NCBI GenBank assembly: GCA_019828565.1
Contig: JAHDYR010000053.1
Coordinates: 842,272 to 906,271, forward strand
Direction: 5' to 3'
From: Carpediemonas membranifera BICM
Lineage: Eukaryota > Protista > Fornicata
DNA length: 64,000 nt
The notes beneath the pieces are model-generated. The model saw nothing but the letters and a program-made list of their open reading frames with translations, made no database searches and was not told the origin of the DNA. Position 1 is the first letter of the stretch, and every line of letters starts with the position of its first letter. This document shows, piece after piece, positions 2,801 through 53,321 of this stretch. The position numbers and the translations under genes are program-made.

Positions 2801-2836
2801 TGCTACAAAACCTATTGGTCCTCACAGGCGAAGAAC

Positions 2837-3607
2837 ATGCCAAGAGGACGTAACTTTTCAATGTTTGTTTCTCTTTTGGGGGATAATGTCGATGGGGCAA
2901 TTTCTGCCGCCTGTGGCGCAGTTCGGGCCGAGTTGCAGAGATTGCAGAGACGAGGCACAACTCAGCGGGCCCACATCGCCATCACCGCCGTGCGCCAGAG
3001 TTTGCATCGGCCCGCTCGGGATGGGGTCCATTACTTCGACCAAGTGGCCCCTGCCCGTCGCCTTCGCCGCCCGCGACAGGCTGACCGCCAGCCTGATGAC
3101 GGACCAGCCGCAGCTGTGCAGCAACAGGGTTCCGGAAACACTACACAGGGGGACGGCGAGGAGGATGGTATGGCATTTGGCGACACCGACGATGACAATA
3201 TCGGAGGGTACCATGCCTACAGCCCTGCCTCTGATGCCGGACCTGCCGTACCTCAAGACAACATCTCATTCGTTGGTTGGGATGACGGATTTGGGTTCGA
3301 CGGTGGTTTTGATGGTTTTGATTCGCCCGAACTCCATGATATCTTGACCCCGATCCCCGTCCGCCTGCATCGTGCCGAGGATCAGCCTGTCCGGGAGGCG
3401 GGTCGTGCCGAGCGACAGCCTGTCCCGAACAGACGTGGGCCCAACCGTGAGAGAGTTGCCGCAGTTTTAGAAAGTGAGACAGAAACGATGGACCCCGACG
3501 CATTTGTCACATTCCGTGACCTCAATGCCGCTCTACAGCCGATTAATAACAGGCTCGAAAGAATTGAGAGCAGCATCGTCGAGATTCTCCGTCGCTTGCC
3601 CGAATAA
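2837..3607 (+). CDS. Hypothetical acidic/low-complexity protein with C-terminal coiled coil (copy 1, 256 aa from ATG 2837)
   Basis: Open frame, heptad-like C-terminus (LQPINNRLERIESSIVEILRRL); differences between copies are frame-preserving. Confidence 0.6.
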   Translation: MPRGRNFSMFVSLLGDNVDGAISAACGAVRAELQRLQRRGTTQRAHIAITAVRQSLHRPARDGVHYFDQVAPARRLRRPRQADRQPDDGPAAAVQQQGSGNTTQGDGEEDGMAFGDTDDDNIGGYHAYSPASDAGPAVPQDNISFVGWDDGFGFDGGFDGFDSPELHDILTPIPVRLHRAEDQPVREAGRAERQPVPNRRGPNRERVAAVLESETETMDPDAFVTFRDLNAALQPINNRLERIESSIVEILRRLPE

Positions 3608-7882: not shown

Positions 7883-9538
7883 CAGAATGCTAGTGTAAAT
7901 ACCTTTGTAAAGATGCCTTGCGGTGATCGACGCGTTGGGCGCAGAGGTGCGCCGAAGAAGGGCATAGGAATGTCGCCCAAGCCGCTGTTGGCCAAGGATT
8001 GGGAGAAGTCATGGCAGTGAACAAACTTGGCTGCAGCGGTGTGGCAGACCCTGCCATTACCCACAATAAGGGCCGCCGCGATCGATCCGACTGTCAGTCA
8101 GAACTGCAACGCGAGTATCACTTCGTGGGGGAACGTTTATCGGTGCTCGATAGCACGCAAGATGCCACCAGAGAAGCGCTTATCTCCGCATTCCTTGTCT
8201 CGCTCGCTGTACCGCCATGAAACACCGGGGAAATCCTCTCACAGCTCAAAGACGCCTTCTTAAGCCACTTCAACGAGCAAATGCCGATGATCCATGACGT
8301 AGAGAGTAGTATTGCACCCAAGCGCGCCTCTTCTCTCGAATCCCTCATCGCCACGCACTCCAAGATCCTCTCGAATCATTCGCGCAAACCCTCCTCGACC
8401 GTGCCCGCTCGATCCACACCAGTTCCCCCCGCTATTCATGAACGTCGAGCTCGCCGATGGAGAGGACCTCCCGGTCGCCATGCACACGCTAAACCAGGGC
8501 GCGGTGCGGGCGGTGCTCATGCAGACCGGGGCAGCCCCGCGACAACCGAGAGCCAGCTGGAAAGGAAGATGCTGACTAATTCAGAGTTACAGTCTCGTTT
8601 GCTTTCATTGCAAGAAGTTCTATTCTGCGGTGAACATTGCAACAAGAGACGGCATCATCGCCAACAACGACGTGCACCATCACCTCTACACCGGAAGGTT
8701 GTTCGAGATGATGCCAGGCGAGACTGGCCACACCCGAGTCAACGCCCCAACTGTCTCCTGGGCGTTTGGTCTGGGGTCTTTCCTGGTCATACTTGCACCC
8801 CCGCGTGGAATCTACGTGCTCGATCGCACCCAGTGGCAAGACATTCAGTTCGATCAGACGCCACCGGAGTATTTCATGTGTGCCCGAGACGGATACTTCA
8901 CCCAATGCCCACGGTGGGAACAGTTCGAAGAAAGCGTGCCCCTTTGGCACAAGGATGATCTTCTTCGGGATGCAGTGTCACTCGGCTGCGTGCTAGTTAC
9001 CCCCGTTGGTCATGTGGCTGCGGGGCGGGTCAGGCAGTTTATTGTAGGGCCCGACTGTGTTGACTCAGCCATGTTTTGTGCCACTGCCTCCGAGAGTTGA
9101 CCGTGTTGTTAGCAGTACAGTTTTCAGCGTCGTTGTCAGTGGGTCACAGCTGATCATGTCTGGGTCGACCCCATCGACCTTTTCAAAGCCTGGGGTGGTT
9201 CCCGGACACAACGAGGAAGACGCATGTCTGACGCCAACTCCACTACAGTTCCAGCGCCGTGTGACGCGTTTCTTCTGTGACAACGTCAGATACGTCGCTG
9301 TGACTGGCCAGGAGTCGATCTGTGCCGCTGAGATCCCGATGAAGCGGCGGGCCAGCGTCACCACAGTTCTCCCATTTGCCGTGGCAGCCGTGGCGACCGA
9401 GCGTAGCACGCGCTTCCTCCCTGTTCAATCTGACGACGGACGCCACTCCAGAACCGATTGGTATGCCAGCTGAAACGGCAGCTGCAACTATTGCAGTGGT
9501 CGACATCGAACCAGGAAATAACAGATAAAACTTTAAAC

Positions 9539-13983: not shown

Positions 13984-16900
13984 ATGGGAGAAACTGGAAG
14001 GCCTGGACGGAGACCTCACCCGGATATGTACATGTGGCCCGACTTTCGGACCCAAAAATTCCGACCCAGTTTATGGACTAGGAAAAGGGGAGAAATTTTG
14101 CACTCAACAATGCAGGTAGAAATACCGACAAGGATCAGGGATTCCACGCAGAAGCAGTGGGAGGACATCAGGGAACTACTGGACAGCTTCCTCGCTGAAA
14201 GGAACGATTCAAGGACTCTACTTCTTCGTAGAACAGGCAAGTTTACAGGAAAGTCGCTCAATGCGAACTCCAAAGGACGCAAGGAAGTAATCATGAACGC
14301 CAGACGCATCCTCTTCGCAACCGGCGTCACTGACAACAAGGACATCATCCTCAGGAACCCATGCGGCATCCACGGCCTCCGCGACCTTTTCTACATGCTC
14401 ACAGAGGCGCTCAACCCCAGAGACGAGGAAGCAAAGGACATGGCACAGGCACTGGAGCCCAAGACGCTGAAAGCGGGCTTCACTGGCATGGCAAGATGGC
14501 CATCTGAGAAGGACATCGAGACGGCGATCCTCAAGCCGAAGGAAGATGGGCCCATCGAATGGGATGTAGACAGGGACAGCGTCAAGAAGGCCGAAGGGTC
14601 GTTCATACTGGTATCAGGGGCTCATGGAGACGAGGCCGTAGAAGGCGTGCCTTACGACAAGGTATGGGATCCGGCAAACCAAGGCCCGGTCACCAGAGTG
14701 GCCTACGAGCAAGAGGACGGCAAGTACAGGGTCATCCTAGAGCTAAGCGACACGTCAGCATGGTCCATCAGCCGCTTCATGGAGGAGGCTAGGGACATCC
14801 TCAGGCTTCAGGCACCGGAGGCCCCGGCCATATGGCAGGCAGCATGGAACAAGTCAGGGATCTACCTGAAGGGCAGAACCAATATCCTGGGCGAAGGGGA
14901 GGAGACCCCCTTAGCAACGAGCCGCCGTTCCGGAAGGTGAGGCTGGAAGTGCTCAAGGCCACCTCGGTCCGCAGCAATAGGGACGAACATGCCGATCTGG
15001 ACAGGTCGTCCGCTAGCACGGTCATCGACGGAGACGAGGAGCAACATGTCAAGGACAAGGAGGAACGACGCCAGCAGGCCACCATGCCCGGCAGAAGAAG
15101 CCTCGACGACAGCCTCCTGGAAGTGAACAAGGACATGGTCGGGGCCAACCAAGGCAAGATCGACCAGGACGAGGAGGTCGACTCAAACAAGGTCAGCAGC
15201 CAGCCGCCGAGGATGCCTAGAAAGGACAAGGAGAAACGACTGGTGATCGGAGCCATCGACTTCGAGTGCGCAGACCCTGGCGTCAAGAAGGCAGGGATCC
15301 CTGCCATCCCGGTTGAGGGCGGGATCGTACTCTTTGACCTCAGCACTGGGGACATTCTTGGACACGGGCATGGCCTGTATTACCAGGACATACCGGCAGC
15401 AAGCATGGACCAAGCGAGGTACACGGCATGGGCAGTGACGGGGCTGCCGCCGGCCACCTTCGTGGAGGTCGGGACGGGGCGGCCGCCGATCGAGTATGAG
15501 AAGCACATACATACTTTCAGGGACTGGGCCAACCGCCTGGCGGCTCAGCTGGCAAGGATCGAAAGGTCGGAGGGTTGGAAGATAATCATGTATGCAAAGG
15601 GGGTGGAGATGGAAAGCTTCCTCCTCACGAACCCCACAAATGGACTGGAGCAAGGAACCAGGGAATTCTTCCAAGCTAGGCTGGTGGACGAGAAGAAGCT
15701 ACCAGAGATCCTGGAGAACAACGGCAAGGAGGAGGCTGGCCAAAACCTCAGGGACAACCTCGACAAGGCCAACTACCTGGAAGCAGTAACAACATGGTCA
15801 AATGGATGGCAGAACAGGAGCGAGCCCAAGGGAGTCTGTCCGTACCACAGACACACCGCGGGTTGCTACCACTGTGGGTTGGCGGATACAGTAGTCTTCA
15901 CAGCCAGGATCAGGGCCCTATGCAAGGAGAGGATGAGCACCCCAGACGTCTACCACTACATGGGTAAGGCACTCGACAAGACCATGGAAGCAGTCGGGAA
16001 GGCGGAGCCGGGCATAGATATCATGGGAGGCCCGGAATTCGCGACAAGGAGGGACACCTTTGAGATCTTCGGCACGTACCCGATCGGGGACGCAAGGGAC
16101 GTCAGCAGGGAAGTCGGCGACAGGATCCTCGTAGTCCCGGACAACGGACACCGCTTCGGCATCGGCTTCGGGTTCGGGGAGGTTCTGTTGGGCATGAAGG
16201 GCATCTTACTGCCCCCCTCACAATCATGGACAACGAAGGTGTACTGGAGAGAAGCCCGCTATGGACCATCATGGAAAGAGCCACGGCTAACCAGCTCCGC
16301 ATGGTACGCGTCAGGAAGGGCCTAGGGGCAGCAAGGGAGGAGGACATCATAACCATGGCCATGCTATACGAGTGGTGGCCCTCGAAGGAGGCTACGGCTC
16401 ATCAAGGAGTCTGGGGCTGCGACGACCTAGCAGAGAGCCTCAGGGACTATGAGAAGGTCATAGTCAACGTCAAGGCCCCCAGGAACAGGGGTAGGATCAC
16501 CCTAGGGGCGAGCTTCATCCCGAGAGACTGGGGCATGGTCAGGGTCAGCGAGGCTGGGACCATCCTAAGCCGCATGCGCAAGGAAGGGGCCAGACTAGTC
16601 TCGGCAGCTATCCCGGACGAGCCCAGAGCCAACACAGTCAATGTCCCAGGCATCACGTATGTCCCCACCATCGACGGAAAGTCCGAACAGCCATACCAAA
16701 GTAGGTTCTTCGACAACGGCCTGGAGGAAAAGGCGAGGCGGATTAGCACCAGGATGGTGGGCAGGCACTTCGGCCAGGACGCGGATCAAGGACATCACGA
16801 CCAGCATGGAGACAGGGAAGAGGACAGAAGGGTAGGACACGGAGCCGGCGGTAGAGCTGGTGTCAGAGCTGACGACAGAACCGGCGACAGAGCTGGTAAC

Positions 16901-17485
16901 ATGAACAGGACCTCGGATCGTAACCACGGAGGAGACGACAGGGAGAGACAGGACAACACGGGAACGCAGATGAGAGGCTCGTTCAGCGGGAACACCTGGG
17001 CCGGTAGAGGCTCAGAGGGAGGCATGGACAACAGCAAGGATCACTCTTCCTCCACGACGCTCAAGCGCAAGGAGGGCAGCACGAGTAGGATCATGGACTC
17101 GGACAGCGGAAAGAGAAGCAGGCACGAAGAGGACATGGACTGGGAGTCTGGAAGCAGACAGGCAACCGGCATGGACTCGGAGAAGCTGCGGCTCCGAAAG
17201 CAGTTGGCAGAGGCGCAACAAGAGATCTCAGCGCTCAAGTCTGCCCGACTCATGCAAGAGCAAGGCCACGGAAGGTTGGTGCTCTCCGGCGTCGCGACTA
17301 AGCCCAGCAAGGAGAAGCCCACGATCCCCCGGCACAAGCACAAGAAGGCTAAGAAGGCCAAGCAGATCTCACCCATGGACCTGATGACCCAGTTCATCAC
17401 GGTAATGCAGAGTCTACAAGGACAGCAAGTGAGTCAGGCCGAGGACAGCTGCAGCGGCAGTGGGGAGTCCACGGAGGAGGAGTAA
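13984..17485 (+). CDS. LINE ORF1 (~1170 aa if two -1 frameshifts are corrected) with a DEDDh/Maelstrom-like exonuclease domain (~15240-15900) and C-terminal coiled coil/basic tail
   Basis: Three overlapping ORFs (13984-14940, 14832-16325, 16226-17485) whose overlaps contain C-runs; motifs AIDFEC...PVEG, YAKGVEME, CPYH...HCGLAD. Confidence 0.7.
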
Positions 17486-17817
17486 GGACATGGTAAAGCA
17501 GTATTCTTTCAAGGAACAAGCAACATTTTCTTTATAATTCACAAGCCCTGGCTCCCACCCAGGGCCCGGCATTAGCTGAAATGCACTGCCGGTAGGCTGT
17601 AGCGGCAGCCAAAGGGGGGGTCACGTCATATCGTCCCCCTCCTAAGTACCCTGCCCGAAGAATGGAAGGTCACCAGGTGGTAACAAGGTTGGCCTGACAA
17701 GGGTCACCGAGACCGGCATCTAGGCCCCTTGTTAGGACAAGGATAGCAGGAGAGGAGCGGGAAGCTGGGGCTCCCAAATTCTGGGAATTCGCAGGATAAG
17801 GAAACAGGACAAAGGCA

Positions 17818-29949: not shown

Positions 29950-32506
29950 ATGCATTTACCTGAAACAAAACTCAACAACGCCCCGTTCCTGCGAAAGGCC
30001 ACCACCAAGTCGTGGTATACTTTCCGTCAAGACTACGAGCAGTATGCTGCCCGTGAAGCCGATCCGATCGTTGCCTTTGACCTAATCGAAACGCAGGTCC
30101 TAGAGGTTCTTAAGATCCGAATCCCTGAACTTGAGGGGTTCCTTGAGTACGCTAATGAAACGCCGGATGAAGAGCCGGCCGATACCTCTGAACTCAACGA
30201 GGCCTTTATCACCATGGTAGACGAGCTGATGCAGCCTCTGGATGAGGTGGACGCTTTAGATCGCTTTAAGGACTTGTCGTGCGGCTCTGAGGGTAACCTC
30301 ATTGACAACATGGCCGCGTATGCCCTGGCGTATAAGCGTCAAGTTCGTAACTGTTGTAAGGTTCGGCCCACGGAGAAGCTCATCGTCGATGCCTTTGTTG
30401 CTGGCATCAGGTACGGTCGCTTGAAGGAGCGAGTGAATGCTAAGAAGGCGAAGACGCTTGACGAGACGATCGCCGAGGCATTCATCCAGGCCACGGAAGC
30501 AGAGAAGGCTCGCAGAGAGCACCAGCGTGTGGAGCGAGAGAGTGCGACCTCCGCAACGATGACTAAGGCTAAGGAGAAGTCGGAAACTGCTTGTGAGTAC
30601 TGCCAGCGCAAGGGTCACACTGCTGATACGTGTTGGAAGCGTAAGCGTGACGAGCGTGAGGGAGTAAAGGGGCAGAAGTACGTTCATCTTAATGCTTTGG
30701 TCGCGGAGGACCGCGACAACAGACCCATTGGCGAGGTGGGCATCCTGGGGAGAGTGTTGGCGTTCCTTTATGACACAGGGGCCTCTGCCGACTTTATATC
30801 CCAATCCCTCGTCAAAGAGCTCGGCCTAGTCGTCGAGCCCGACCATGCTAAGGTTAAGCTGGCCACTGGTACGATTTACAACTCACCCGGCATTGTTAAG
30901 TTGAGTGCAGATTTTGGAGTGTTGCCATCTACTGGGCGGAGAACTCAAGCTGCTCTCAATTTGCGGGTGCTACCCGGGCTGAAGCCGACATTAGTTATGG
31001 GAATATCGACATTAAGTGCGTTGGGGCTAATCACGATCGTCAAGCCGACGATGGAGAATTCTGGAGAGCCACACTTCGCGGAGCTTGATGAAGATGAAGT
31101 AGACGAGACGTTATTTACCCTTGCTGAAGCGGAGCACGAACTACAGATACGTAGCTTCCCTGAAGAGACTAATACCATCCTAAGCAAGTACAAAGACGTT
31201 CTCGGCGACATTTCGCAGCCAGCAGACGTTCCACCCTTCGAACTGGTTCTTACAAACCAGAAGGTTATCAACATCCCTCCATACCACGTCTCGGCTGAAG
31301 AAAGAGAGGATATGCAGCGCCAGACGGCGCAGCTGGAGGATCTGAATGTGATTGAGGAGTCTACGAGCAACTATAACAATCCTACGGTGCTTGTATGGAA
31401 GCGCGATCGCACCCGCAGGCTCTGCTTGGACTTTCGGCGCCTTAACGACGCGACGGAGGACTTCGATCACGACCTCCCTATCATTGACGATCTGGTAGCA
31501 AGACTAGAGGGTAAGACCCTCTTCGCTAAGCTGGACCTAAGCAAGGCCTTTCACCAGATTCCTATGACCAAGAGCTCACGCAGACTAACGGCGTTTACAG
31601 TTGGGAAGCGTAAGTACCAGTACAAGCGTTTAGCTTTCGGACTCAAAGGGGCCGCAGCCTTCTGTCAGAAGACCCTCGAATCCGTACTAGGCGATGCACT
31701 GTGGACACGGTGTCTCGCATATGTAGACGACATAGTAATATTCGGAGAGAACCAGAGAGAGTACCTCGACAATCTGGACTATGTCTTGAGAAAGCTCAAC
31801 TCGGCCAAGTTGAAGCTGAATCTGTCCAAGTCTGAGTTCGGACTGACAGAAATAGAATACTTGGGCTGGCTTGTGAATGGCGACGGCAAGCGAATCGCGC
31901 CTGACCGCCTAGAAGGCATCGACCGCCTAACCAGCCCGAGAGATGTTGCCGGAGTCAGAACCTTACTCGGGTTCACGAACTATTTTAGCCATATGATTCC
32001 GAACTACGGCAATATGATGGAGCCAGTCCTGGCTCTGACGAGAGCCAAGGAAGAGTTCCGTTGGGAGAAGGCCCAACAAGATGCCCTAGTCGACATCAAA
32101 GCGACCCTATCTCAGAACAACATGTTAAGTCACCCCAAGCGTGGCTGCCAATTAATCCTACAAACCGACGCGAGTGACTACGCTGTCGGGGCAGTTTTGT
32201 TACAGATCGAAGACGGGGAGGAGCGTCCGATTGCTTTCTATTCCAAGACACTATCGGATGTTCAAAGAAGGTGGAGCACCTATGAAAAGGAAGGCTTCGG
32301 CATTTATTACGCTATGATCAAGGCCGAGCGGTTCCTAGTAGGCAGGCCGTTTACTGTGAGAACGGACCACCGGAATTTGCTGTATATCGCGACAAGCACG
32401 AACGCTAAGGTAACTAGATGGCGCATGGCACTGGAAAGGTTCGACTATTCCGTCGTACACGTGCCTGGTCAAGCGAACGGTGCTGCCGACGCGCTATCTC
32501 GCCTAT
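29950..32506 (+). CDS. Element D gag-pol, 5' part (Gag, PR, RT, RNase H)
   Basis: CEYCQRKGHTADTC, YDTGAS, LCLDFRRLN, LDLSKAFHQ, YVDD, QTDAS, ADALSRL. Confidence 0.93.
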
Positions 32507-34254
32507 CATACTGTCAATTCCTTGACTTCAAGTCAAGTTTTTGTGACTTAAAGTCAAGGCCAAAACTTGACTTTAAGTCAAGACGTTTGAATTAATCAGA
32601 GGAACCAGGCTCTGTCAGTAAATAAGAATGGTATGGCTGGGTAGCAGTACTAGTTCTCTATTCACTGCATTGATGGCTAACTGTGGGCTAAGCTGTGACC
32701 TGAGTATGGGTGACTTCTTCTTGACGACGAGAGCCATTTTTTTCAAGTTCGACCACTTTGGCTCTGTCCCCTTCGCAGTTTTTTGCAGGATCTGATCTAC
32801 ACCAGTAGTGCTTGTGATCCAACAAAAATCTGCGAAGGGGACAGAACAGATCTCGAGATTTTTAGCAAAAGACTCGGGCCGAGTCGAGAGGCGTTATTGA
32901 TGAGCGCACAGCTCAGGGAATTTTTCTACGCTGCAACTAAAAACCAAGAGGCCGAGTAAACACAAGTATTACTACACGATGATGCCCAGACCGTCGTGTA
33001 AGGAGAACATTCTTGGGCGGTCAACGCGAAGAAAAAGTTAAAGTTATTGGAATTAAAAAGACGGCAATGTACTCGCCCTTGGCTGAAACCTCAGGCATAA
33101 TGGTTTCAGGTGTGAACTCTTCCAATTGGGGGAGTTATTGTTATTGTTCAGTTTAAGGTCACGCCGCCTGCATGAAAAAAAATGGTAATGACGGAAGCAA
33201 TGTCGGAGATATCCAGAAATGACTGTGATAGAGCTCATAGCAAGACAGCATTCGAGATATTTGCCCATCTGAGCATGCTTTCGCTCATTCTAGATGCCAT
33301 AAGCCTCTTTTCCCACAACTAATCAATATCAAGTCGGCCATTACTCAGTATCGCTCGCTCAGACATCTGAAACGTCCCCATTGGCAATATAACCCTGCTG
33401 GAACAGTGAAGTGGCGAGCATAGAGTTCTATTGATGACGAAAGGTTGCGACCGGCAAGCGCCTGGTTCATACGGCCATTTGGGGCGGCGCGAGAGCCAAT
33501 CTCGTTAATGAAAGGTAGGATGATGCGCGTATGAGTGTTTGTAGGGTCACTAACGACCTTAATGACGAGTTAGGACGTGTGGCAGGGCCGTGCGCTGCCG
33601 GAATACACAGGGCAGATTCGCCCCGTTGATTCCAGAAGCTCGCCGCTCTTCCACGCACGATAGTCAATACAGGGATAGATACACATCTGGACCTCTTTTA
33701 TACAGCCAACCAGGCTCCGCATAAACTGCGCATTTCAGATGACGCCCGATGAAGAAAACACACGAGCGACGCCGGTATCGCCGGCGAAACGTATAGCATT
33801 AACGATTGAAGGGATAGAATTGGAGCTAGACGTTGTTTATGGGATTCAACGAGCGCACTTCATTGATTCTCGCATTGATGGTGAATTAGAGCAGATGAAG
33901 CGCTGCACGGCAAGGATCAAGACATTTTGTTCATACTACATAGCAAATTACAACGAGTTTTCGATGTGAATAGATCTGTAAATAGAGAGAAACCTGTAGC
34001 AGCCGGATAAACACTGTCAGTCAACAGCCCAACCGAAGACACGCCAAAACACAAGCACAAGTCAGTTTTACTCAGTTTGATTCCCGCAATTGCAGAGTAG
34101 TTCTCATGGCAGTCTTTGCAGAGATTGCAGAGATGATGGGGTGGAGACACTCGATATTTGCATTTGTAGATGAGTTGGAGATAAATGTAGTCACTGACGC
34201 TAATCACCTTTTTGCAATGACACGGATGACGGAGTTCGTCATTCAATCTCGTTG

Positions 34255-34510
34255 CGAGCCATAAAGTGCACCAATAGTGGGAACCGACTTCCCACTATTT
34301 TCTCAGTGCCAATGAGCTATAGAGCTTTATTGAGGATATAAGCTTGCATAATAACACATCAATAGCGTCTGACGGCCGCTATGGCCCATGATACTCAATA
34401 ACAACATCAAACGAGTCAAAGGAACCACGAAACCACACAAGGAACGAGCTAGAAGAAACGATAGGAACTTTAATTGCATAAACAACATCAATACTGCCAC
34501 CAGCTGTCCA
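34255..34510 (+). repeat. 256-bp direct repeat, copy 1 (copy 2 at 38986-39241)
   Basis: Three substitutions seen between copies; contains the hairpin AATAGTGGGAA-CCGAC-TTCCCACTATT. Confidence 0.95.
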
Positions 34511-34582
34511 GTCAGCGCCCCAAAGCCAACAGCACCACGGCAGCACCACGACGCCACCGCAATTCATTCATTTACTACTGAC

Positions 34583-36342
34583 TCATTCCACAAAATAACA
34601 GTCATCCTCTGTGTTCTGTTGGGCAGACAGGTGCGATTCTGCCTTCCTCAGCTCAACAGGTGTTGCATGGTACACTTCCGCGTGTGCTGTGACGTCAGTT
34701 GGCGTGCCGGAGATATAAATGTAGTCATTGACGCCAATCACGTTTGCAATGACACGGATGACGGACATGCTCGCATTAGTGTTTGTCAGGGTGATGTAAC
34801 CCTTGTCTCTACCCTGGAAGAAGACGATTGTGCCGTCCTGGATGGATGCAATGGGCATGTTGTGAATCTGTGACCAGACCTGAATTGCGGTGTCCCGGCA
34901 GTATGGAAGACTGTCGTTCTTGCCACCCTTGCCTGTTGAACTGGCATGGCTGTAAAAGAGCTGATAGTCTGCCGGAAGTAGGTCGCGCTTCTGCATAATC
35001 CCTGCAGCAGCTTGAAGCTGCTTACGCCAATCTGTTGTCGGTACGTCACGCTCGTTAGACACATGCCTGAGGCAGTGGCCAACACAGTCACCATCGCCTG
35101 GGGGGTTGTACGGCTTGAACTTCGACCGGAGGTGACGTGTGAACTCGTCCAGGCAGTCCTCTCTCTCCTCGGTCTGGACATCCTTGTCATCTGTCGGGGT
35201 ACGGTCGTCACCTTCGTTCATCTCAGTTCCAGTCTCGCAGGTCACAGGTCTGGCCTTCTCGGGCTCAGTCTGGATACAGGCGTCGCATTTGGTCACGTCC
35301 TCCTCATCTGACTCACCCTTCTTCTCAACAGTCACCTCCTCCTCTATCTCCTCCTCCTCTGACTCCTCCTCCGAGTCCTCTGGCCTGGCCTTCTCGGGCG
35401 TGATGATGAGGGCCTTGCGCTTCACAGACATGGAGGCCTCGGGCTCGTCCGTATCGCGTCGGGGACAGGAAGTCCTGGAGACTGTGCCAGACTGTGGCGG
35501 GATGGGGCTGCATGGGAGTGATGCATCTATGGACTTGTCAGCGTCATAGGCTGCCTCTCGCTCAGCCTGCTGCTGCAGAAGGCGTCGATGCAGCGTGATG
35601 ACTTCCTCACTCTTTGCCGTCAAGCTCTTCCTCAACTGCTTGACTCTCTTCTTGTATCCTCGAACAATTTTGTGATAGTAATCGATGATAGCGCCAGTAC
35701 CTGGGGGGAGCAGGGGCGTACCTTCTCCCGCGGGGGTCTCCAACCATTCCAGGGCGATGATGTACTCTTCGAAGTACGAGCGGCAGGAGTGCTTCATGTA
35801 AGCAAGGTCTGCCTCCTTGCTGCGCACCCTGGCAACCATTGCTGTGACATGGTCGCGCACAAGCGCGTTGGTGGATGTCGCGTTGCGCCACGCCCGAACC
35901 TTGACACTCAGCGCCTCTTTTTCGATACGCGCGCCCTCATTCTCCTTGGCATACTCAGCCCTCTTGGAGTTCTTGAAGGCTGTGACAGCGGCCGACTCAA
36001 ACGCCTTCATCTCCTTCTCCGTGAAGGTTGCCTCGATGATCTCGTTCGAGGTCTTATCCTGCACCTGCTGAGACAGCAATGCCTCGAGTTCTGCCTTCTT
36101 CTCGCCCTGAATCTCGAAATATGAGCACAGGTGGTTGAAGTTGATCCCTATATAAACATTTGCACCAATTACGTACCGTTCTTGACGACTATATCGAAGA
36201 TATCGTTCTCGTCGAGCAATTTGTCCCGAAGAACGGCACTCTTCGCCTTGTTTGTCTTCTTCTCCTTGAATTCGGTGATAACGGCCTCAATCACATCATC
36301 TGAGGTGCTCTCGATCCACTCGTGAAGGAATTCGAACGTCAT
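34583..36342 (-). CDS. Cargo gene of element G: coiled-coil/acidic protein with C-terminal OTU-like cysteine protease domain (576 aa; 29-nt intron 36148-36176)
   Basis: PYNPPGDGDCVGHCL resembles the OTU Cys loop (.PGDGNC.F.A.); distal His in AHAEVY. Removing GTACGT...TTTATATAG joins the 36169-36441 ORF in frame. Confidence 0.65.
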
Positions 36343-37126
36343 TCTTCTCTTCGTTATATCCCAATAATGGACATATAACAGAGATGAGAAAATTGCCAGT
36401 AACCGTAGGCAACGGGGTGTCGGAAACGTTATACCATACAAACGGGGGATATAATCGCTCCGAAAACACCCATTATGTGGACTGAATGGCGATATAACGT
36501 ATGGGGAGTGATCCGGCGAGCTTTCGGGCGGTGCAGGCTAAGACACACCAAGTCTGTGGTGCTATAACGTACCTCGGGACGCACTGTGGAGGCCCCTAGA
36601 GTACTCGGTCATGGCATGTCAGACCAAGGGTCCCTCAAATCTGGCCCCATTCAGGATGCACCCCCTAAATGTTCCGTTGCAAGCGTCTGACGGGCGTTCT
36701 CTGGATACCGACCAAGATGGAGGTCACGTGGATCAACGGACGATAATTGCGGTATTCTGGCCATGCCTGGTACTCTCAAATCATCTATACTGCTCTGTGG
36801 TTCATTTATTGTTCATATCGTATGGTCCTGATGGACTTATGATGATTGATGTTGTTTAGGGATTATTGTTGCTTTAGTGATGCTCTGCGCCCGCCAACTG
36901 ATGTTTCTTAGTGTTGTGTACATGCCTACTACGTTAAAGCCGCCAGTATTCTTTCTATTCTTAAGTTCGCCATTTCAATCTCGTTGCGAGCATAAAGTGC
37001 GCGAATGCGCGGGTCAGTTCCCCCGTTTTCAGCGAAGCTGATGCGACAACACAGAGGCAAGCGAATCCTTACACCTCAGGCGTTGCCAAGAGGCCGTTGT
37101 CTGCCAGGATCTATTAGCAGTGATGA

Positions 37127-37455
37127 GATATACGGATTTCAGACTTTCTGCCTGCACGACCTCAAATGTTGACTCCCCTCGGCACCGAAAAGGCACCTAT
37201 ATCCATGAATACCCTCTACAGTGATGTATCCACCCGATAAATGGATTTCAAATTTGTCGGGTCTCATGATAAATGGATTTCAGACTTTCGTACTGTTGGC
37301 CATCTGAGAATTTATGAACGACCTCTAGAATATTTTGAATGCAAGAACGTGCCTATGGCACTCTATTGTACCCCTGAACACGGTTTGACCACTGTTTTGG
37401 GCATTTGGAGAGATTCGAATTTTTGTGCATGACGAAAGTCTGAAATCCGTATATC
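37127..37455. promoter_or_regulatory. 329-bp segment bounded by perfect 22-bp inverted repeats, ending just before the ATG of the recombinase-like gene (MITE or invertible/regulatory segment)
   Basis: GATATACGGATTTCAGACTTTC at 37127-37148 and its reverse complement at 37434-37455; internal degenerate copies at ~37236 and ~37268. Confidence 0.7.
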
Positions 37456-37456
37456 G

Positions 37457-38845
37457 ATGGAAGGAAGCCCGCAGGAGATGGAAACAACCATGGAAGCTAT
37501 GAAAGAAGCTTGGTTGAACAAGATTAAGAAGAAATCTTCCCGGAAAGCGGTCGCAAACAACCTTTCGCGGTTCGTTCAATTCTTACAACGTGAGCGAGGG
37601 AGTACCGAGGATGAAGCGCTCTCCGTGATCCGATCCGAGGAGGTTAGATCGCTTGTGCCCGGTTTTGCTGCATCATTGAACAAGGCAACCGCTGCTGTCA
37701 CTCTCAGTGCCGTCAACTCATTCCGAAACTCCGGCAGAGACAATGTCAAGCCGCTTGGGCAGTTTGAGCCTGTCGCATCGGAAGCTATTGTCCGACTAGT
37801 CTTCCCCTACAATGCGCTGGCTCTTATCATCAGCCACACGGGCATGACTGCCACATCAGCCCGCGATATTGATGTGAGCGAGCTCCAGATTCCCCCGGAA
37901 CTCTCTGACTGGTTGCTATTCACCGGGGCACCATCTGCGATGTCCGCTGTGATGCCTAGCACCTTCTCGCAGGCTCTCAAGTCGGTCGGGCTGAGTGTTA
38001 ACCAGCTTCGCTATGCGCCCACTGTGCATGTCGATCTCAATCAGCTCAAGAAGCGGGTGATTGAGACACAAAGACGGACTGGCAGGCCCAGGGATCCGAT
38101 CAAGGTTCGTAAGGTCATTAAGGACAAGCGCATCAGCCTGACCGATGAGCAGTTCAGGCATCAGTTGGCGTCCAGTCACTTAACGACCACGCGGCGCCCA
38201 ACGATCCTCGATCTCAACCCGGAGATCCGAAGCTCTGCTGACCTGGTGCCGCCGACGCTCGATGACTGGCTTTACAACAAGCTCAGGATTAGGATGGTCC
38301 AGCTCCACGACCAGCGTAAGCCCGAGGGGGGCGACACGGGGGAGGGTGAGTCTGACGATGAGGCGCTGTTTGACGAGACAGCTGGCGAGGCAGAGATGCC
38401 GGAGACCGCAGTGGAGGGCGAGTTTGACGATGAGGCCGGGTTGGAGATGCTGGAAGGAGAGTGGGAGGATGAGGAGAGTTCAGACAGCGATGCCGAGGAT
38501 AGCCTCGTCGACAACCTGTCATTTCTTCAGTCACAACAGGTTGAGTGTGATATGTCTGAGAGAGATACCGATGAGGGTGTCCGTAGCGGGGCCAATGGAA
38601 GTGGGCTCGCTCCGCTCTATGACGCTATGAAGACCAGGGAGCCCAGCAGACGCATTCGCCTTCGCCGCTATCACGAGAGCGAGTCAGACTTGGGCAGCAG
38701 CAGCGACAGCGAGGACGGGATGCCGAAGCTGCCCGTTGAGGCCTTTGAGCACATCCGTGATGCCGGGATGACAACTGTGAGGCTGACGAGGGCCGAGTAT
38801 GACGACCTGATGGAGAAGAGAGAGCAGGAAAAGCATCAGAAGTAA
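37457..38845 (+). CDS. Degenerate tyrosine-recombinase-like protein with acidic C-terminal half (462 aa)
   Basis: Core-binding-like helices (KSSRKAVANNLSRFVQFL; ATAAVTLSAVNSF), box I-like ALIISHTGMTATSARDIDVSEL, box II-like GLSVNQLRY. The catalytic Arg and His are replaced and no Tyr nucleophile is evident. Confidence 0.55.
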   Translation: MEGSPQEMETTMEAMKEAWLNKIKKKSSRKAVANNLSRFVQFLQRERGSTEDEALSVIRSEEVRSLVPGFAASLNKATAAVTLSAVNSFRNSGRDNVKPLGQFEPVASEAIVRLVFPYNALALIISHTGMTATSARDIDVSELQIPPELSDWLLFTGAPSAMSAVMPSTFSQALKSVGLSVNQLRYAPTVHVDLNQLKKRVIETQRRTGRPRDPIKVRKVIKDKRISLTDEQFRHQLASSHLTTTRRPTILDLNPEIRSSADLVPPTLDDWLYNKLRIRMVQLHDQRKPEGGDTGEGESDDEALFDETAGEAEMPETAVEGEFDDEAGLEMLEGEWEDEESSDSDAEDSLVDNLSFLQSQQVECDMSERDTDEGVRSGANGSGLAPLYDAMKTREPSRRIRLRRYHESESDLGSSSDSEDGMPKLPVEAFEHIRDAGMTTVRLTRAEYDDLMEKREQEKHQK

Positions 38846-38985
38846 ATGAACGAAGTAAATATGTCGTGGGAATGACTCAAACACTGACTAAGCCATCGAC
38901 TTGGCGCAGCTGACCAGACAGTCAGATATACATTCATTTATTCCTGTCTCGCTCTCTTGCCTGTCGGAGACCAGCGGATTGAGAT

Positions 38986-39241
38986 CGAGCCATAAAGTGC
39001 ACCAATAGTGGGAACCGACTTCCCACTATTTTCTCAGTGCCAATGAGCTATAGAGCTTTATTGAGGATATAAGCTTGCATAATAACACATCAATAGCGTC
39101 TGACGGCCGCTATGGCCCATGATACTCATTAACAACATCAAACGAGTCAAAGGAACCACGAAACCACACAAGGAACGAGCTAGAAGAAACAATAGGAACT
39201 TTAATTGCATAAACAACATCAATACTGCCACCAACTGTCCA
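38986..39241 (+). repeat. 256-bp direct repeat, copy 2
   Basis: Near-identical to 34255-34510. Confidence 0.95.
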
Positions 39242-39272
39242 TTGGATTCCAGAAATAGCCATTGTCTCTTCT

Positions 39273-39832
39273 GGAACGTCCGGGAGAGAGCACAGGGGAG
39301 AGAGCCCCAGGAGAAGAGAGCCCGGGGGAACGTCCGGGAGAGAGCACGGGGGAGAGAGCCCGGGGGAACGTCCAAGAGAGAGCACGGGGGAGAGAGCCCC
39401 GGGAGAAGAGAGCCCGGGGGAACGTCCGGGAGAGAGCACGGGGGAGAGAGCCCGGGGGAACGTCCAAGAGAGAGCACAGGGGAGAGAGCCCCAGGAGAAG
39501 AGAGCCCGGGGGAACGTCCGAGAGCACGGGGAGAGAGCCCGAGAAGAGAGCCCGGGGAACGTCCAAGAGAGAGCACGGGGAGAGAGCCCGGAGAAGAGAG
39601 CCCGGGGAACGTCCGGAGAGCACGGGGAGAGAGCCCGGGAGAAGAGAGCCCGGGGAACGTCCAAGAGAGAGCACGGGGAGAGAGCACGGAGAAGAGAGCC
39701 CGGGGAACGTCCGGGAGAGAGCACGGGGAGAGAGCCCGGGGAACGTCCAAGAGAGAGCACGGGGAGAGAGCCCCGGGAGAAGAGAGCCCGGGGAACGTCC
39801 GGGAGAGAGCACGGGGAGAGCACGGGGAGAGA
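39273..39832. repeat. Purine-rich complex minisatellite built from GGGGAACGTCC, GAGAGAGCAC and GGGGAGAGAGCCC blocks
   Basis: Directly visible tandem blocks in shuffled order. Confidence 0.95.
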
Positions 39833-40191
39833 TATTGGGGCCCCGAAAACGCCAGCACCACCGCAAGTAAGCTATTTTATTGCAAAATACTCTACTTGCG
39901 CTGGTACTACAGCGTTTTCGCGGCCCTTGCCCATCATTCGTCGTCTGATTTTTTCGTGCAGAATTCAAACGAGTGCCGCCTGGCAGAGGCTGAGCATCTG
40001 AGCGTGGTCCCTGCGGTATCACTCGTCAGGCATAGCTCCCGGGCATGCTCACGAAAATTCAGGTGCAGATTTGGGAGCAGAATGATCGACGAACCCCGAA
40101 AACGCCATAACCGGCACCAGTGAGCATATCTTCGTTGATGAAGCTCATTGGTGTTGGTATTATGGCGTTTTCGGGGTTCTAATACTGTACT

Positions 40192-40409
40192 CCTCATCTC
40201 TGGCGCCCTCATCCTGGCGCCCTCATCCTGGCGCCTCATCCCTGGCGCCTCATCTCTGGCGCCCTCATCCTGGCGCCTCATCTCTGGCGCCCTCATCCTG
40301 GCGCCCTCGTCCTGGCGCCTCATCTCTGGCGCCTCATCTCTGGCGCCTCATCTCTGGCGCCCTCATCCTGGCGCCTCATCCCTGGCGCCTCATTCCTGGC
40401 GCCCTCATC
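40192..40409. repeat. Minisatellite of 13-15 bp units CTCATC(T)CTGGCGC(C)
   Basis: Directly visible tandem repeats. Confidence 0.95.
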
Positions 40410-42032
40410 GCAGCGCCCACACAGCACCCCTACGCCAGCGCCACGACGCCACCCTCAGCGCCACGCCAGCCCCGCATCACCGGCGCCCTCAACAGCAAGT
40501 TCCATCATCCACATCACTCCCTAACAACATCAACGACTCGCCTACCACCGACAGCGATGGCGAAGTCTGCGTTGATGTCGCCAGTGCCAACCCAGCTGGC
40601 ATACGCGTCGCAATGAATGTAAATGTTTACGTGTTCTCTTCGTCCCTTCTATCGTCCAGGATCTGCTGTCAGACGTCCATGAGCGATCATCCCTTATCCT
40701 GCGGAGCAGCCCAACATCAGCTCAAGCGGTTCTGAGCATGCGTACAATGCTTCTGGGGCATGCAGAGTGATCATGTAGGAGCTTTATCACGATTCCAGGC
40801 TAGTTAGTGAGGGAATTCGTCTGCAGTTCCCGGCAAATCTCATTATCTCCATTATTGCTGCAGTATTCAAAGTAAACGCGAACAACACGATCTATCTCCA
40901 TTCATTGGCGCCTCGAGGAGCGCTTCAGTCCCTCTAGAGCGTGCTTCAGCAGCATTTCGATCGAGATTAAAAATCACCCGAATTCTAGCTCTGTTCTGTG
41001 GCCGCTGCAGGCACCGCTGGGCGCGATAGAGCTCGGAGCGGCGTTGTCTGCCAAAAATACCTATTTGCTCCCGGTGAAAATTGAACCCACGATCAGGGGG
41101 CTGTGTACAAAGCCTCTTCCCTCTATGCCACGACTTATGGGAAATCCGCCCTTATTAATCTCCCTACAGGGAATATAGGCCATTTTGGAGGTATGAGCGA
41201 CCGGGAGGGGGGGAATGGGGGACATTTATGGTATGGCTGGACTCTACTCGGGCAGACTTTATGATAAGGCTCAGATCAGACCTCTACGACAGCTATACGA
41301 GGAGAAACGAGCCAAGCAGCGCGCTAGCGGCCCATGGCCGCAGCAGCGCCCAGCAAAGCTCAGCTATAGGGTCACCTGAGGCCCCAAATGGCGTGCTGAT
41401 CAGGTCGACTCCCATCTATTGACTTGGTAATTGCAGAGGGCGTCTGAACGCGATGTCCTAATAACCGACTTGGTCGGAGCGGTTCGGCGATGACTCCGTT
41501 GTATTCCACACCTTCTTCTGATGCCGAAACATGCAGTCCTTTAGAGTCAACGCGCGTCCTGTCCGTCAGGCATGAAGGGCATTCAGCAGAGGCATTGCTG
41601 CGGTCTGCAGGCTGCCCTAGCGCTTCAGGATGGCCAACTGCATGATCTGGACCCATGTCTATCAAATCCATTTTGATCACATCAAACGTGTGTCAAATCC
41701 GGCAAATCGATTTTGCGATAAAAAAAGGGGCAGAAGGGAGGAAGCGACCCATACGGCGTACTTATGGACCATTTCCTCCCACCTGCCCGTTTTTTGAGTC
41801 TCAACTCTCAATTCCAATTTGTCCCTATGTTACTTTTTTCTAGCAGGATTTAAAGTTTGATACTGCGCATGCGTATTGCTTAGGAATAGCCAAGTACTAC
41901 CATACCACTTTGAAGATCCAGCTCCGGCTCATCGTCGAGTTCATTTTTTCTTGCAAAATGACTTAAAGTCAAGTTTTGTCCTTGACTTTAAGTCACAAAA
42001 ACTTGACTTGAAGTCAAGGAATTGACAGTATG

Positions 42033-43314
42033 ATGCGGTGCAACAGTCGAGGCAGATGATCACGCCACGTGGATCTCCGAGGTTCACGGAGGCATACACG
42101 GCCATCTCGGAGCGAGAGCGACGGTGAACAAGCTTATATCGCTCGGTAGGAGGTGGAGGGGCATGTATAAGGACGCAGAGGAGTTTGTCCAGTCGTGTCC
42201 TGTGTGCCAGGTCACGCGCAAGACGGCCAAGCCCGTCCAACACTTGTGCCACCGTACGGCAGGTCGCCTGCCGTTTGATGTCGTGCAGGTAGACACGATC
42301 GGACCCATCGCGGAGAGCGAGGGTCTGCGGTACGTGTGCGTGTTAATTGACACGTACTCGAAGCTAACTATGCTGGTCCCCACGCGTTCGACGGACGCAG
42401 ATGCCGCGGCAGGGGCAATTTTGGCCTGGGTGGGTCACTACGGAATTCCCCGGGTGATTCACAGCGACGGGGGCAGCCAGTATAGAAATAAGCTGATTGA
42501 CGCTCTAATGGAAAGGCTCGGGTCGCAACATCACGTCGGCACGCCTTACCGCCCGGGTTCTCAAGGAATAGTTGAGAGGGTCAACGCCGAGGTTAAGAGG
42601 CATCTAGAGACGCTAATGCTCGATCTGCAGGAGTTTAGATGGACGCGGCTACTACCTTTGGCTCAGTACATCATTAATTCAACATCTGTGGCCAGGACAG
42701 GCCTATCGCCACTGAATTTGCTTTATAACCAAGACGTGGTCGTAAGACCAGAAGAGATCATGAGCAATGAGAGCAAGATGCCATTTGAGGCCTTCAAGCG
42801 CAGCCTGGAACTACAGAGAGTCATCCAAGACCAGGCGCTGCAACAACAAACACCATCAGAAGCATCACACGTGGCCCTATCGAACAAGCCAGTGCTGGTA
42901 ACGACCACTGTCGGCCGCCGCACGAAGCTGGCTGGGCCAATGTGGTGCCAGGGACCCGCAGAGTCGCCGAACGTTTACTACGTGGAGAACCTGACGACAG
43001 GCGTAGTGGCTAAGGTCCATGCCGAGCGTCTAAGACATTTTGAGTCTGACGCGACAAGGGCTGAGTTGACACGGCTCGCGGCCCAGAGAGTTGACGAATA
43101 TGTCGTAGAAGCGATCGACTCTCACAAATTTGAGGACGGCGTCCTTCACCTACATGTGCTGTGGGAGGGGTACCTCGAGGAAGAGGCGACATGGGAACGC
43201 TTCAACGCCGACCTTGATGAACTTAGGGCGTTTGAGGAGTACCTCGCAGACAAACCGAGTTTGCGCAGAAAACTCCGAGGTCAAAGGAAATTAGCTTCCT
43301 ATAGGCAGCGCTAA
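42033..43314 (+). CDS. Element D gag-pol, 3' part: integrase and chromodomain
   Basis: HGGIHGH...CPVC, QVDTIGP, HSDGGSQY, GIVERVN, EYVVEAIDSH...VLWEGY. Confidence 0.93.
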
Positions 43315-50647: not shown

Positions 50648-53321
50648 CCCTCCACCTCCTACCGAGCGATATAAGCTTGTTCACCGTCGCTCTCGCTCCG
50701 AGATGGCCGTGTATGCCTCCGTGAACCTCGGAGATCCACGTGGCGTGATCATCTGCCTCGACTGTTGCACCGCATAGGCGAGATAGCGCGTCGGCAGCAC
50801 CGTTCGCTTGACCAGGCACGTGTACGACGGAATAGTCGAACCTTTCCAGTGCCATGCGCCATCTAGTTACCTTAGCGTTCGTGCTTGTCGCGATATACAG
50901 CAAATTCCGGTGGTCCGTTCTCACAGTAAACGGCCTGCCTACTAGGAACCGCTCGGCCTTGATCATAGCGTAATAAATGCCGAAGCCTTCCTTTTCATAG
51001 GTGCTCCACCTTCTTTGAACATCCGATAGTGTCTTGGAATAGAAAGCAATCGGACGCTCCTCCCCGTCTTCGATCTGTAACAAAACTGCCCCGACAGCGT
51101 AGTCACTCGCGTCGGTTTGTAGGATTAATTGGCAGCCACGCTTGGGGTGACTTAACATGTTGTTCTGAGATAGGGTCGCTTTGATGTCGACTAGGGCATC
51201 TTGTTGGGCCTTCTCCCAACGGAACTCTTCCTTGGCTCTCGTCAGAGCCAGGACTGGCTCCATCATATTGCCGTAGTTCGGAATCATATGGCTAAAATAG
51301 TTCGTGAACCCGAGTAAGGTTCTGACTCCGGCAACATCTCTCGGGCTGGTTAGGCGGTCGATGCCTTCTAGGCGGTCAGGCGCGATTCGCTTGCCGTCGC
51401 CATTCACAAGCCAGCCCAAGTATTCTATTTCTGTCAGTCCGAACTCAGACTTGGACAGATTCAGCTTCAACTTGGCCGAGTTGAGCTTTCTCAAGACATA
51501 GTCCAGATTGTCGAGGTACTCTCTCTGGTTCTCTCCGAATATTACTATGTCGTCTACATATGCGAGACACCGTGTCCACAGTGCATCGCCTAGTACGGAT
51601 TCGAGGGTCTTCTGACAGAAGGCTGCGGCCCCTTTGAGTCCGAAAGCTAAACGCTTGTACTGGTACTTACGCTTCCCAACTGTAAACGCCGTTAGTCTGC
51701 GTGAGCTCTTGGTCATAGGAATCTGGTGAAAGGCCTTGCTTAGGTCCAGCTTAGCGAAGAGGGTCTTACCCTCTAGTCTTGCTACCAGATCGTCAATGAT
51801 AGGGAGGTCGTGATCGAAGTCCTCCGTCGCGTCGTTAAGGCGCCGAAAGTCCAAGCAGAGCCTGCGGGTGCGATCGCGCTTCCATACAAGCACCGTAGGA
51901 TTGTTATAGTTGCTCGTAGACTCCTCAATCACATTCAGATCCTCCAGCTGCGCCGTCTGGCGCTGCATATCCTCTCTTTCTTCAGCCGAGACGTGGTATG
52001 GAGGGATGTTGATAACCTTCTGGTTTGTAAGAACCAGTTCGAAGGGTGGAACGTCTGCTGGCTGCGAAATGTCGCCGAGAACGTCTTTGTACTTGCTTAG
52101 GATGGTATTAGTCTCTTCAGGGAAGCTACGTATCTGTAGTTCGTGCTCCGCTTCAGCAAGGGTAAATAACGTCTCGTCTACTTCATCTTCATCAAGCTCC
52201 GCGAAGTGTGGCTCTCCAGAATTCTCCATCGTCGGCTTGACGATCGTGATTAGCCCCAACGCACTTAATGTCGATATTCCCATAACTAATGTCGGCTTCA
52301 GCCCGGGTAGCACCCGCAAATTGAGAGCAGCTTGAGTTCTCCGCCCAGTAGATGGCAACACTCCAAAATCTGCACTCAACTTAACAATGCCGGGTGAGTT
52401 GTAAATCGTACCAGTGGCCAGCTTAACCTTAGCATGGTCGGGCTCGACGACTAGGCCGAGCTCTTTGACGAGGGATTGGGATATAAAGTCGGCAGAGGCC
52501 CCTGTGTCATAAAGGAACGCCAACACTCTCCCCAGGATGCCCACCTCGCCAATGGGTCTGTTGTCGCGGTCCTCCGCGACCAAAGCATTAAGATGAACGT
52601 ACTTCTGCCCCTTTACTCCCTCACGCTTACGCTTCCAACACGTATCAGCAGTGTGACCCTTGCGCTGGCAGTACTCACAAGCAGTTTCCGACTTCTCCTT
52701 AGCCTTAGTCATCGTTGCGGAGGTCGCACTCTCTCGCTCCACACGCTGGTGCTCTCTGCGAGCCTTCTCTGCTTCCGTGGCCTGGATGAATGCCTCGGCG
52801 ATCGTCTCGTCAAGCGTCTTCGCCTTCTTAGCATTCACTCGCTCCTTCAAGCGACCGTACCTGATGCCAGCAACAAAGGCATCGACGATGAGCTTCTCCG
52901 TGGGCCGAACCTTACAACAGTTACGAACTTGACGCTTATACGCCAGGGCATACGCGGCCATGTTGTCAATGAGGTTACCCTCAGAGCCGCACGACAAGTC
53001 CTTAAAGCGATCTAAAGCGTCCACCTCATCCAGAGGCTGCATCAGCTCGTCTACCATGGTGATAAAGGCCTCGTTGAGTTCAGAGGTATCGGCCGGCTCT
53101 TCATCCGGCGTTTCATTAGCGTACTCAAGGAACCCCTCAAGTTCAGGGATTCGGATCTTAAGAACCTCTAGGACCTGCGTTTCGATTAGGTCAAAGGCAA
53201 CGATCGGATCGGCTTCACGGGCAGCATACTGCTCGTAGTCTTGACGGAAAGTATACCACGACTTGGTGGTGGCCTTTCGCAGGAACGGGGCGTTGTTGAG
53301 TTTTGTTTCAGGTAAATGCAT
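50648..53321 (-). CDS. Element F gag-pol, 5' part
   Basis: Near-identical to 29950-32506 and continues through the uninterrupted RNase H/IN junction. Confidence 0.93.

Follow-up and report, generated by a model that had tools for sequence, protein, structure and literature searches.

The DNA analyzed here, referred to below as the window, is a 64-kb stretch of the genome of Carpediemonas membranifera, a free-living metamonad (C39:842272-906271; C-numbers denote contigs of the 24.2-Mb, 69-contig assembly, and L-numbers denote loci extracted from those contigs). The subject of this study is a 9.5-kb transposable element in the window that sits within the pol open reading frame (ORF) of a Ty3/gypsy retroelement. 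The element is bounded by terminal inverted repeats (TIRs) whose arms, at 32505-32580 and 41959-42034, extend over 76 nt including a palindromic flanking AT and are 99% complementary to each other. The TIR proper is 74 nt long (left, 32507-32580, plus strand; right, 41959-42032, minus strand), and the element ends read CATACTG...CAGTATG. Following the terminal octamer CATACTGT, the left TIR holds three copies of the 13-nt palindrome TGACTTNAAGTCA, at 32523, 32544, and 32568, spaced 21 and 24 nt from start to start, with the counterparts in the right TIR at 41959, 41983, and 42004. These six exact palindromes, three per TIR, compare with 0.12 expected by chance in the 64-kb window, and no copy at 0 mismatches occurs in the window outside the two TIRs.

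The dinucleotide AT flanks the element on both sides (32505-32506 and 42033-42034). An empty site carrying a single AT is present elsewhere in the window, at 50759-50789, and across the genome 21 copies of the host retroelement have the target uninterrupted, with a single AT. Hence, the insertion was precise, duplicated the AT, and took place after the host element had spread. A first-pass annotation of this DNA had described 74-bp TIRs with three palindromes each and CATAC...GTATG ends, an AT duplication with an empty site, an insertion later than the spread of the gypsy host, and an interior of direct repeats, hairpins, and minisatellites, all of which are borne out. The interior does contain a 256-nt direct repeat, hairpins, and minisatellites with units of 14 nt and ~46/92 nt.

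The element belongs to a family. A 31-nt terminal pattern has 32 matches in the genome, all without mismatch, and the reversed pattern used as a control has 0. All 32 termini carry the CATACTG...CAGTATG ends. Nine pairs of termini delimit complete elements of 6.8 to 11.8 kb, and the remaining 14 of the 32 have no partner, a result of contig ends, nested insertions, or rearrangements. Matching 2-bp flanks are present in eight of the nine complete copies (AT, TA, AT, AG, CT, AG, GT, and TC), for which the chance probability, at 1/16 per copy, is ~2e-9. Since six different dinucleotides are duplicated across these eight copies, the target site duplication (TSD) is not AT-specific, and the family makes a 2-bp TSD without target-sequence preference. 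Pairwise identity between copies is 97-99.9%, with size differences residing mostly in the minisatellites. Segmental duplication as the source of the copies was rejected in view of their unique flanks and TSDs.

Three copies, on C3, C62, and C6, diverge from the window copy just beyond a common left 1.6 kb. The copy at C3:323120-334965 (C3b) is 11.8 kb long with a TSD of GT, the copy on C62 begins at C62:15127, and C6:1278524-1285314 is a truncated version. After the left 1.6 kb, the C3 and C62 copies hold 3,689 bp that the window copy lacks, and this segment carries a divergent gene pair separated by 42 bp, with a 438-aa ORF reading on the minus strand and an 857-aa ORF on the plus strand. 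Both genes have left stumps in the window copy. Beyond the left subterminal region (32581-33919), which is 98-100% identical in all family copies including the transposase-bearing ones, positions 33920-34123 on the minus strand (C39:876191-876397) still code for residues 370-438 of the C62 438-aa protein (~69 codons, 91% identity). An 8-nt filler, ATTGCAGA, follows at 34124-34131, and positions 34132-34173 on the plus strand code for DDGVETLDICICR plus the stop codon, the 13-residue C-terminal end of the 857-aa protein. The 31-nt junction that joins the two stumps is identical in 12 copies, and intact boundaries are found in 2 (C3 and C62), with the derivative thus outnumbering the gene-bearing form ~4:1 (12 copies versus 2-3). 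One exact junction common to 12 copies points to a single deletion followed by amplification in trans.

We therefore consider it highly probable that the window element arose by internal deletion within a family of cut-and-paste DNA transposons and, although non-autonomous, moved recently with the help of a RAG1-fold transposase encoded in sister copies. The derivative arose by the ordinary route of non-autonomous class II elements. The proposal in the first-pass annotation that the element lacks its own transposase and was mobilized in trans holds, with no transposase family among the window ORFs and gene stumps at the deletion junction, and the autonomous partner it recommended looking for is provided by the same-TIR copies on C3 and C62, which encode the 857-aa RAG1/Transib/CACTA-like transposase. 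The annotation had also allowed for the element being an ordinary deletion derivative of a standard transposase copy. This is half correct, in that a transposase-bearing copy does explain the window copy, but the transposase is not a standard one recognized by protein family libraries.

Proteins encoded by sister copies match NCBI entries of C. membranifera exactly. Among them, the 857-aa ORF is uninterrupted in the C62 copy and identical to the NCBI protein J8273_7647. It has no Pfam match at E <= 0.1, and a word search of 5.8 billion proteins returned four relatives, all from Carpediemonas. With HMMER, a profile built from three paralogs found 19 proteins among 1.84 billion representatives, 15 of them below 1e-30. 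Of ten whose records were consulted, four are annotated C. membranifera proteins, and the other six come from NCBI, ENA, and JGI/IMG records, with some clusters having Logan members. The organism's own genome holds 57 matches, of which most are open frames 800-880 aa long with 31-49% identity, and several of these transposase paralogs are present as multiple identical copies.

An alignment of 18 family members reveals near-invariant W362 and D364 (in WxDGW), D443 (in GDHKA), PPxMHxSH (537-544), RTTGCNEQ (590-597), and LLEExFERDF (E718, E719, and E722). Kojima's CMCT clade unites CACTA/EnSpm, Mirage, Chapaev, Transib, and others, with 5'-CA..TG-3' ends and TSDs of 2-5 bp (PMC12730594), and Kapitonov and Koonin likewise group Chapaev with Transib (PMC4411706). 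In the interval of the CMCT motifs, CxxC is absent from all 18 aligned members, and there is no conserved column corresponding to H(3-4)H among them. The residues conserved in this interval are H541-x2-H544, C594, and E596.

An AlphaFold2 model of the 857-aa protein, computed from the 18-sequence alignment, has a mean predicted local distance difference test score (pLDDT) of 81.9 and a predicted template modeling score (pTM) of 0.75. In the model, one strand of a three-stranded sheet carries D364, D443 ends the fourth strand, and E718 is helical, 275 residues further on. The predicted architecture combines an RNase-H core and a large insertion of helices, and D364, D443, and E718/E719 are the predicted catalytic residues of a presumably active enzyme. 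A Foldseek search of the PDB with this model yielded 48 matches at E <= 0.001, all of them RAG1, the RAG-like transposase BbRAGL from amphioxus, or HzTransib (best RAG1 E value, 5.6e-9). With VIA-align, RAG1 scores Z 13.7 over 443 residues (root mean square deviation 6.0; model 130-762 versus RAG1 478-1026), followed by HzTransib at Z 12.7 and BbRAGL at Z 12.1, with ISCth4 at Z 8.2. Sequence identity to the RAG1, RAG-like, and Transib proteins is ~10%. The offsets between the aligned ranges (model ~134-760 versus mouse RAG1 ~461-1005) are consistent with an equivalence of D364/D443/E718 to D600/D708/E962. The ESM Atlas, a separate and weaker source than these model comparisons, ranks RAG1 clusters among its closest feature neighbors (0.92) and, by predicted structure, has CACTA-type Transposase_21/DUF4218 models nearest (template modeling score 0.64-0.67), with RAG1 at 0.64-0.65. 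Judged by its model, the 857-aa protein would thus be a DDE transposase of the CMCT-type group.

The 438-aa protein encoded next to the transposase has no Pfam match, and a word search found no homologs. A six-frame search of the genome does detect paralogs at 26-32% identity, and accessory and transposase genes are divergent neighbors at at least 19 paralog loci, for example C8:991775-992893(-) with 993055-995286(+), C7:421833-422948(-) with 423110-425653(+), and C57:17729-18847(+) with 15024-17567(-). This conserved pairing argues that both genes may serve transposition, as in CACTA or RAG1L/RAG2L elements. In the C-terminal third of the protein, a C4HC3 (PHD-type) pattern is visible by eye, and the stretch after it is weakly similar to FYVE fingers (1wfk, E 0.006). 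Nothing in its sequence suggests a RAG2-like protein. Separately, a family of ~414-aa open frames, found at at least 20 near-identical loci (among them C16:37913-38752, C24:271186-272031, and C1:875150-875995), matches accessory residues 128-386 at 31%. None of the ~414-aa loci compared adjoins a listed transposase paralog.

The right end of the element links it to other families. The right subterminal region, plus strand, covers ~1.0-1.26 kb (40918-41956, starting at 40700 at some loci) and recurs at 93-97% identity at at least 30 other loci that carry another TIR, with all these matches ending two bases before the TIR. A 224-nt right subterminal repeat was also considered as a fragment of a long terminal repeat, a candidate we rejected since it belongs to this sister transposon family. 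At L049:775-851, the matching region continues into a different 76-nt end, CATACTGTGAAAGTCGGTAGATAATCTACGATTTTTTCTAGATAATCTAGGGCCTAAAAACCCTAGATTATCTATGG, which we call type 2. This end has the same terminal octamer CATACTGT and the same T-rich and GGCC-AAAA spacers as the type-1 end of the window family, with palindromes at positions 17, 38, and 64 (versus 16, 38, and 61 in type 1), and it has TAGATWATCTA in place of TGACTTNAAGTCA. It occurs 37 times in the genome, and at at least 10 loci it lies ~1.1 kb downstream of an 879-aa transposase paralog that is 40% identical to the 857-aa protein.

Two further types bring the total to four TIR types, all of which begin with CATACTGT. The end at L052:6190-6277 (C13) has GGGTAC-type palindromes and adjoins a 913-aa transposase paralog (L052:2435-5176) that is 25% identical, and the end at L057:9210-9293 (C54) has two GGAATTTCC repeats. 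Ahead of the 913-aa paralog on L052, a 559-aa ORF read in the same direction contains the RCC1-like motif GxNxxGxLGLG. From the pattern of shared and variable positions, the conserved catalytic part of the transposase would recognize the terminal octamer, and the inner sites may carry family specificity. A near-identical 1.2 kb in families whose transposases are 40% identical suggests a recent exchange of end modules. We put forward, as a tentative proposal that could well be wrong, that Carpediemonas harbors a self-contained radiation of zinc-less RAG1-fold transposons in which CATACTGT is fixed, specificity resides in a swappable three-site palindrome cassette, and end modules are exchanged by recombination. 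If true, such a radiation would be a natural experiment in which a recognition code (heptamer plus specificity element, compare the ends of recombination signal sequences [RSSs] and Transib) co-evolves with both its recombinase and a zinc-finger partner protein.

The existence of the sister family raises the question of which enzyme mobilizes the type-1 TIRs. The 879-aa paralog could do so in place of the linked 857-aa protein: the sister family is more abundant, with 37 termini and at least 10 intact transposase genes, it shares the terminal octamer, the TIR layout, the spacers, and a right subterminal region 93-97% identical, and the cognate 857-aa gene has been seen in one uninterrupted copy. 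However, the palindromes of the two families are wholly different (TGACTTNAAGTCA versus TAGATWATCTA), a transposase identity of 40% suggests separate specificities, and one TSD-flanked copy carries the 857-aa gene in physical linkage with type-1 TIRs. We consider mobilization by the sister enzyme unlikely and retain the linked 857-aa transposase as the probable driver of the window family.

The cargo carried between the ends differs among copies, which answers the check on cargo variability that the first-pass annotation had advised. In the window copy, the cargo consists of a 498-aa OTU-like ORF (34583-36079, minus strand) and a 462-aa ORF (37457-38845, plus strand) whose C-terminal half is acidic. 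In the C62 copy, their place is taken by other ORFs, including a 243-aa ORF (L059:6906-7634, minus strand) that occupies the position of the OTU-like gene and has a borderline SET-domain match (22.0 bits versus a cut-off of 22.4), and the C3b and C54 copies carry further replacements. Apart from this borderline match, Pfam searches of the ORFs of variant copies gave sub-threshold noise, as did those of ten ORFs of the window copy, among which no transposase family was found. The earlier OTU-like label finds a lead in the 498-aa ORF, whose C-terminal ~190 aa may form an OTU-type cysteine protease, in a GDGDC motif visible by eye and an Atlas feature score of 0.91 to OTU-bearing clusters. The lead stops there, with no Pfam or PDB sequence match for the ORF and a single-sequence AlphaFold model of the OTU-like region that is unusable at a pLDDT of 34; a word search with this region matches solely copies in the same genome. 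The recombinase-like label given to the 462-aa ORF drops out, as this ORF has no Pfam or PDB sequence match.

Could the window copy nevertheless be autonomous, mobilized by an ORF of its own such as the 462-aa protein? Both large ORFs are intact in it, and neither has a recognizable family. TIRs with a TSD of fixed 2-bp length are, on the other hand, a signature of DDE transposition and not of tyrosine or serine recombination, and the copy bears the stumps of a DDE transposase gene. In addition, many sister copies have single-base gaps in both the 498-aa and the 462-aa ORF, and the C6a and C3b copies lack the 462-aa ORF altogether and still have TSDs. An autonomous window copy is accordingly very improbable. 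ISL2EU elements make 2-bp duplications, and the first-pass annotation had pointed to this ISL2EU or PIF/Harbinger-type group from the AT duplication, but an AT-targeting transposon of that type can practically be dismissed: AT flanks the window copy and the C54 copy, whereas the other copies are flanked by TA, AG, CT, AG, GT, and TC, and the linked transposase matches no Pfam family, those of PIF/Harbinger type included.

The rest of the interior is made up of repeats. The two copies of the 256-nt direct repeat (34255-34510 and 38986-39241, both on the plus strand) are 99% identical. Both give the same ORF start, MIL[N/I]NNIKRVKGTTKPHKERARRN..., in window regions 34388-34873 and 39119-40123, and the repeat may be a promoter-plus-leader cassette ahead of differing downstream sequences. 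A G/A-rich minisatellite at 39273-39852 varies in length among copies and is the main source of their size differences; a 14-nt minisatellite (CTGGCGCC[C]TCATC) at 40172-40451 varies likewise.

Some family members lie within or against one another. The C62 copy, whose transposase gene is intact, sits inside another member of its own family: its left flank, L059:1-200 (C62:14927-15126), is 100% identical to the interior of C3b (L044, element coordinates 8526-8723). A copy on C13 is likewise nested within a family member. Palindromic arrangements are found at C13:5999-18711 (L051, L045, and L046) and C1:552596-574104 (L047, L039, and L040). On C13, 20 bases outside one terminus match the reverse complement of the sequence outside another (14 compared), and a full inverted copy has a partial left end (1-3604) directly against its right terminus; on C1, 162 of 200 positions are the same in the two 200-nt flanks. 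These palindromes could be products of aberrant transposition (sister-chromatid or self-targeted) or assembly fold-back artifacts.

Several observations weigh against a sister-encoded RAG1-fold transposase as the mobilizer of the window element. At the level of sequence, RAG1 and CACTA profiles do not match the transposase family. Scans of the genome with RAG1 PF12940 (nothing at E <= 1) and with PF02992 (Transposase_21; no match) were also negative, weakly so in that the controls were silent as well, and the transposase family profile searched against PDB sequences returned no RAG1 chain and nothing else relevant. At the level of structure, the P element transposase reaches Z 11.9 with VIA-align, a small margin, and a fold match alone leaves the superfamily unfixed; the equivalence with the RAG1 catalytic residues was deduced from alignment ranges, not from residue-level superposition. 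Among the copies, C67:884032-893582 (L031 and L032) is the sole complete one with unmatched flanks (AA left, GC right), which may stem from recombination between copies or an adjacent deletion. The gene-bearing module differs between C3 and C62 by two substitutions and by three single-T length differences in T4/T5 runs; in C3, the latter break the transposase frame (two) and the accessory frame (one), either as assembly errors or as real changes. The sole uninterrupted 857-aa ORF, on C62, lies in the nested region, and a search with the 31-nt pattern found no matching right terminus on the C62 contig.

The following sequence of events would account for the ends, TSDs, empty sites, deletion junction with its gene remnants, linkage of module and TIRs, and fold match seen here. 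The full-length 11.8-kb parent would carry the divergent two-gene module beside the left subterminal region, and a single 3,689-bp deletion would have removed nearly all of both genes while keeping both 74-nt TIRs. Transposase acting in trans would then have spread the derivative to at least 12 places. The enzyme is expected to recognize the terminal CATACTGT common to several paralogous families, and the family-specific 13-nt palindromes would be contacted by either the N-terminus of the transposase or the accessory protein. Excision of the element, by a cleavage chemistry that may for example involve hairpin formation, would be followed by joining to the target with a 2-bp stagger, whatever the target sequence.

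What appeared to be a cargo element without a transposase is explained as a deletion derivative with a nameable driver. The window element is a real, young, non-autonomous copy, and its family is an undescribed, unusually divergent lineage of the RAG1/Transib/CACTA transposase group; our literature search found no description of DNA transposons in Carpediemonas. The transposase is invisible to Pfam and has 19 detectable relatives among 1.84 billion representative proteins, with its family occupying at least 50 loci in the 24-Mb genome of a free-living metamonad. It has a predicted RAG1/Transib/CACTA fold without the zinc motifs said to unite the CMCT clade and makes a 2-bp rather than a 5-bp duplication. 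The family thereby extends what is known of the transposase group ancestral to V(D)J recombination, both in sequence space and in host range, and it lends itself to direct testing through its near-identical copies, empty sites, and family-specific TIR codes.

Compared with known systems, the family differs from the ISL2EU and PIF/Harbinger elements, for which a PIF-type DDE transposase and a fixed TA, TWA, or AT target are expected; here, the TSD sequence varies and the linked transposase has a RAG1 fold. The window copy itself closely resembles ordinary non-autonomous class II derivatives such as Ds of Ac and dSpm of En/Spm, in that an internal deletion with junction filler removes the transposase gene and keeps both ends, and in that the derivative is commoner than the parent. 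It differs from them in its remaining length of 9.5 kb, its two large intact ORFs, and its long minisatellites.

CACTA/EnSpm elements have a two-gene organization, TnpA/TnpD, which the Carpediemonas family shares. The remaining likeness is to predicted structures only (the Transposase_21 models of the Atlas). In contrast to CACTA, the family has no Pfam Transposase_21 (PF02992) or DUF4218 match, its termini read CATAC, and its TSD is 2 bp long as opposed to 3 bp.

The solved structures of RAG1, the RAG-like proteins (ProtoRAG and AanRAGL), and Transib are the best matches to the transposase (Z 12-13.7 over 380-450 residues, RAG1 ~460-1007). Like the heptamer and nonamer of the RSS, the ends of the family combine a conserved part proximal to the cleavage site with an inner specificity element. 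The partner gene is divergent, as in the AanRAGL1/2 pair, a divergent RAG1L/RAG2L gene pair reported from a unicellular alga (PMC9435367). In contrast, the TSD is 2 bp, where that of Transib and RAG is 5 bp; there is no sequence match to the RAG1/Transib core (Pfam at E <= 0.1); and, as judged by motif, the zinc ligands at the ZnC2 and ZnH2 positions of RAG1 are lacking. The partner is a 438-aa PHD/FYVE-type zinc-finger protein that, from its sequence, gives no sign of a RAG2-like propeller.

With the CMCT clade as a whole (PMC12730594), the family has in common the DDE/DDD RNase-H fold, represented by D364, D443, and E718/E719, by the RAG1/Transib fold matches, and by the beta1-3/alpha1/beta4 core of the model, in agreement with the DDE RNase-H fold. 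It also shares the 5'-CA..TG-3' termini, present in all 32 termini and in the three other TIR types, a 2-bp TSD (eight of nine copies) within the clade's range of 2-5 bp, and short motifs repeated inside the ends. It differs from the clade in lacking the C(2)C and H(3-4)H motifs (18 of 18 aligned members), in having CATACTGT as its terminus instead of CACTA or CACAGTG, and in having 13-nt palindromes in a fixed three-site layout as its inner motifs. As the termini, the TSD, and the fold agree with the clade, but the zinc motifs and a 5-bp TSD are absent, we file the lineage as a divergent one that falls within or next to CMCT and assign it to neither Transib nor CACTA.

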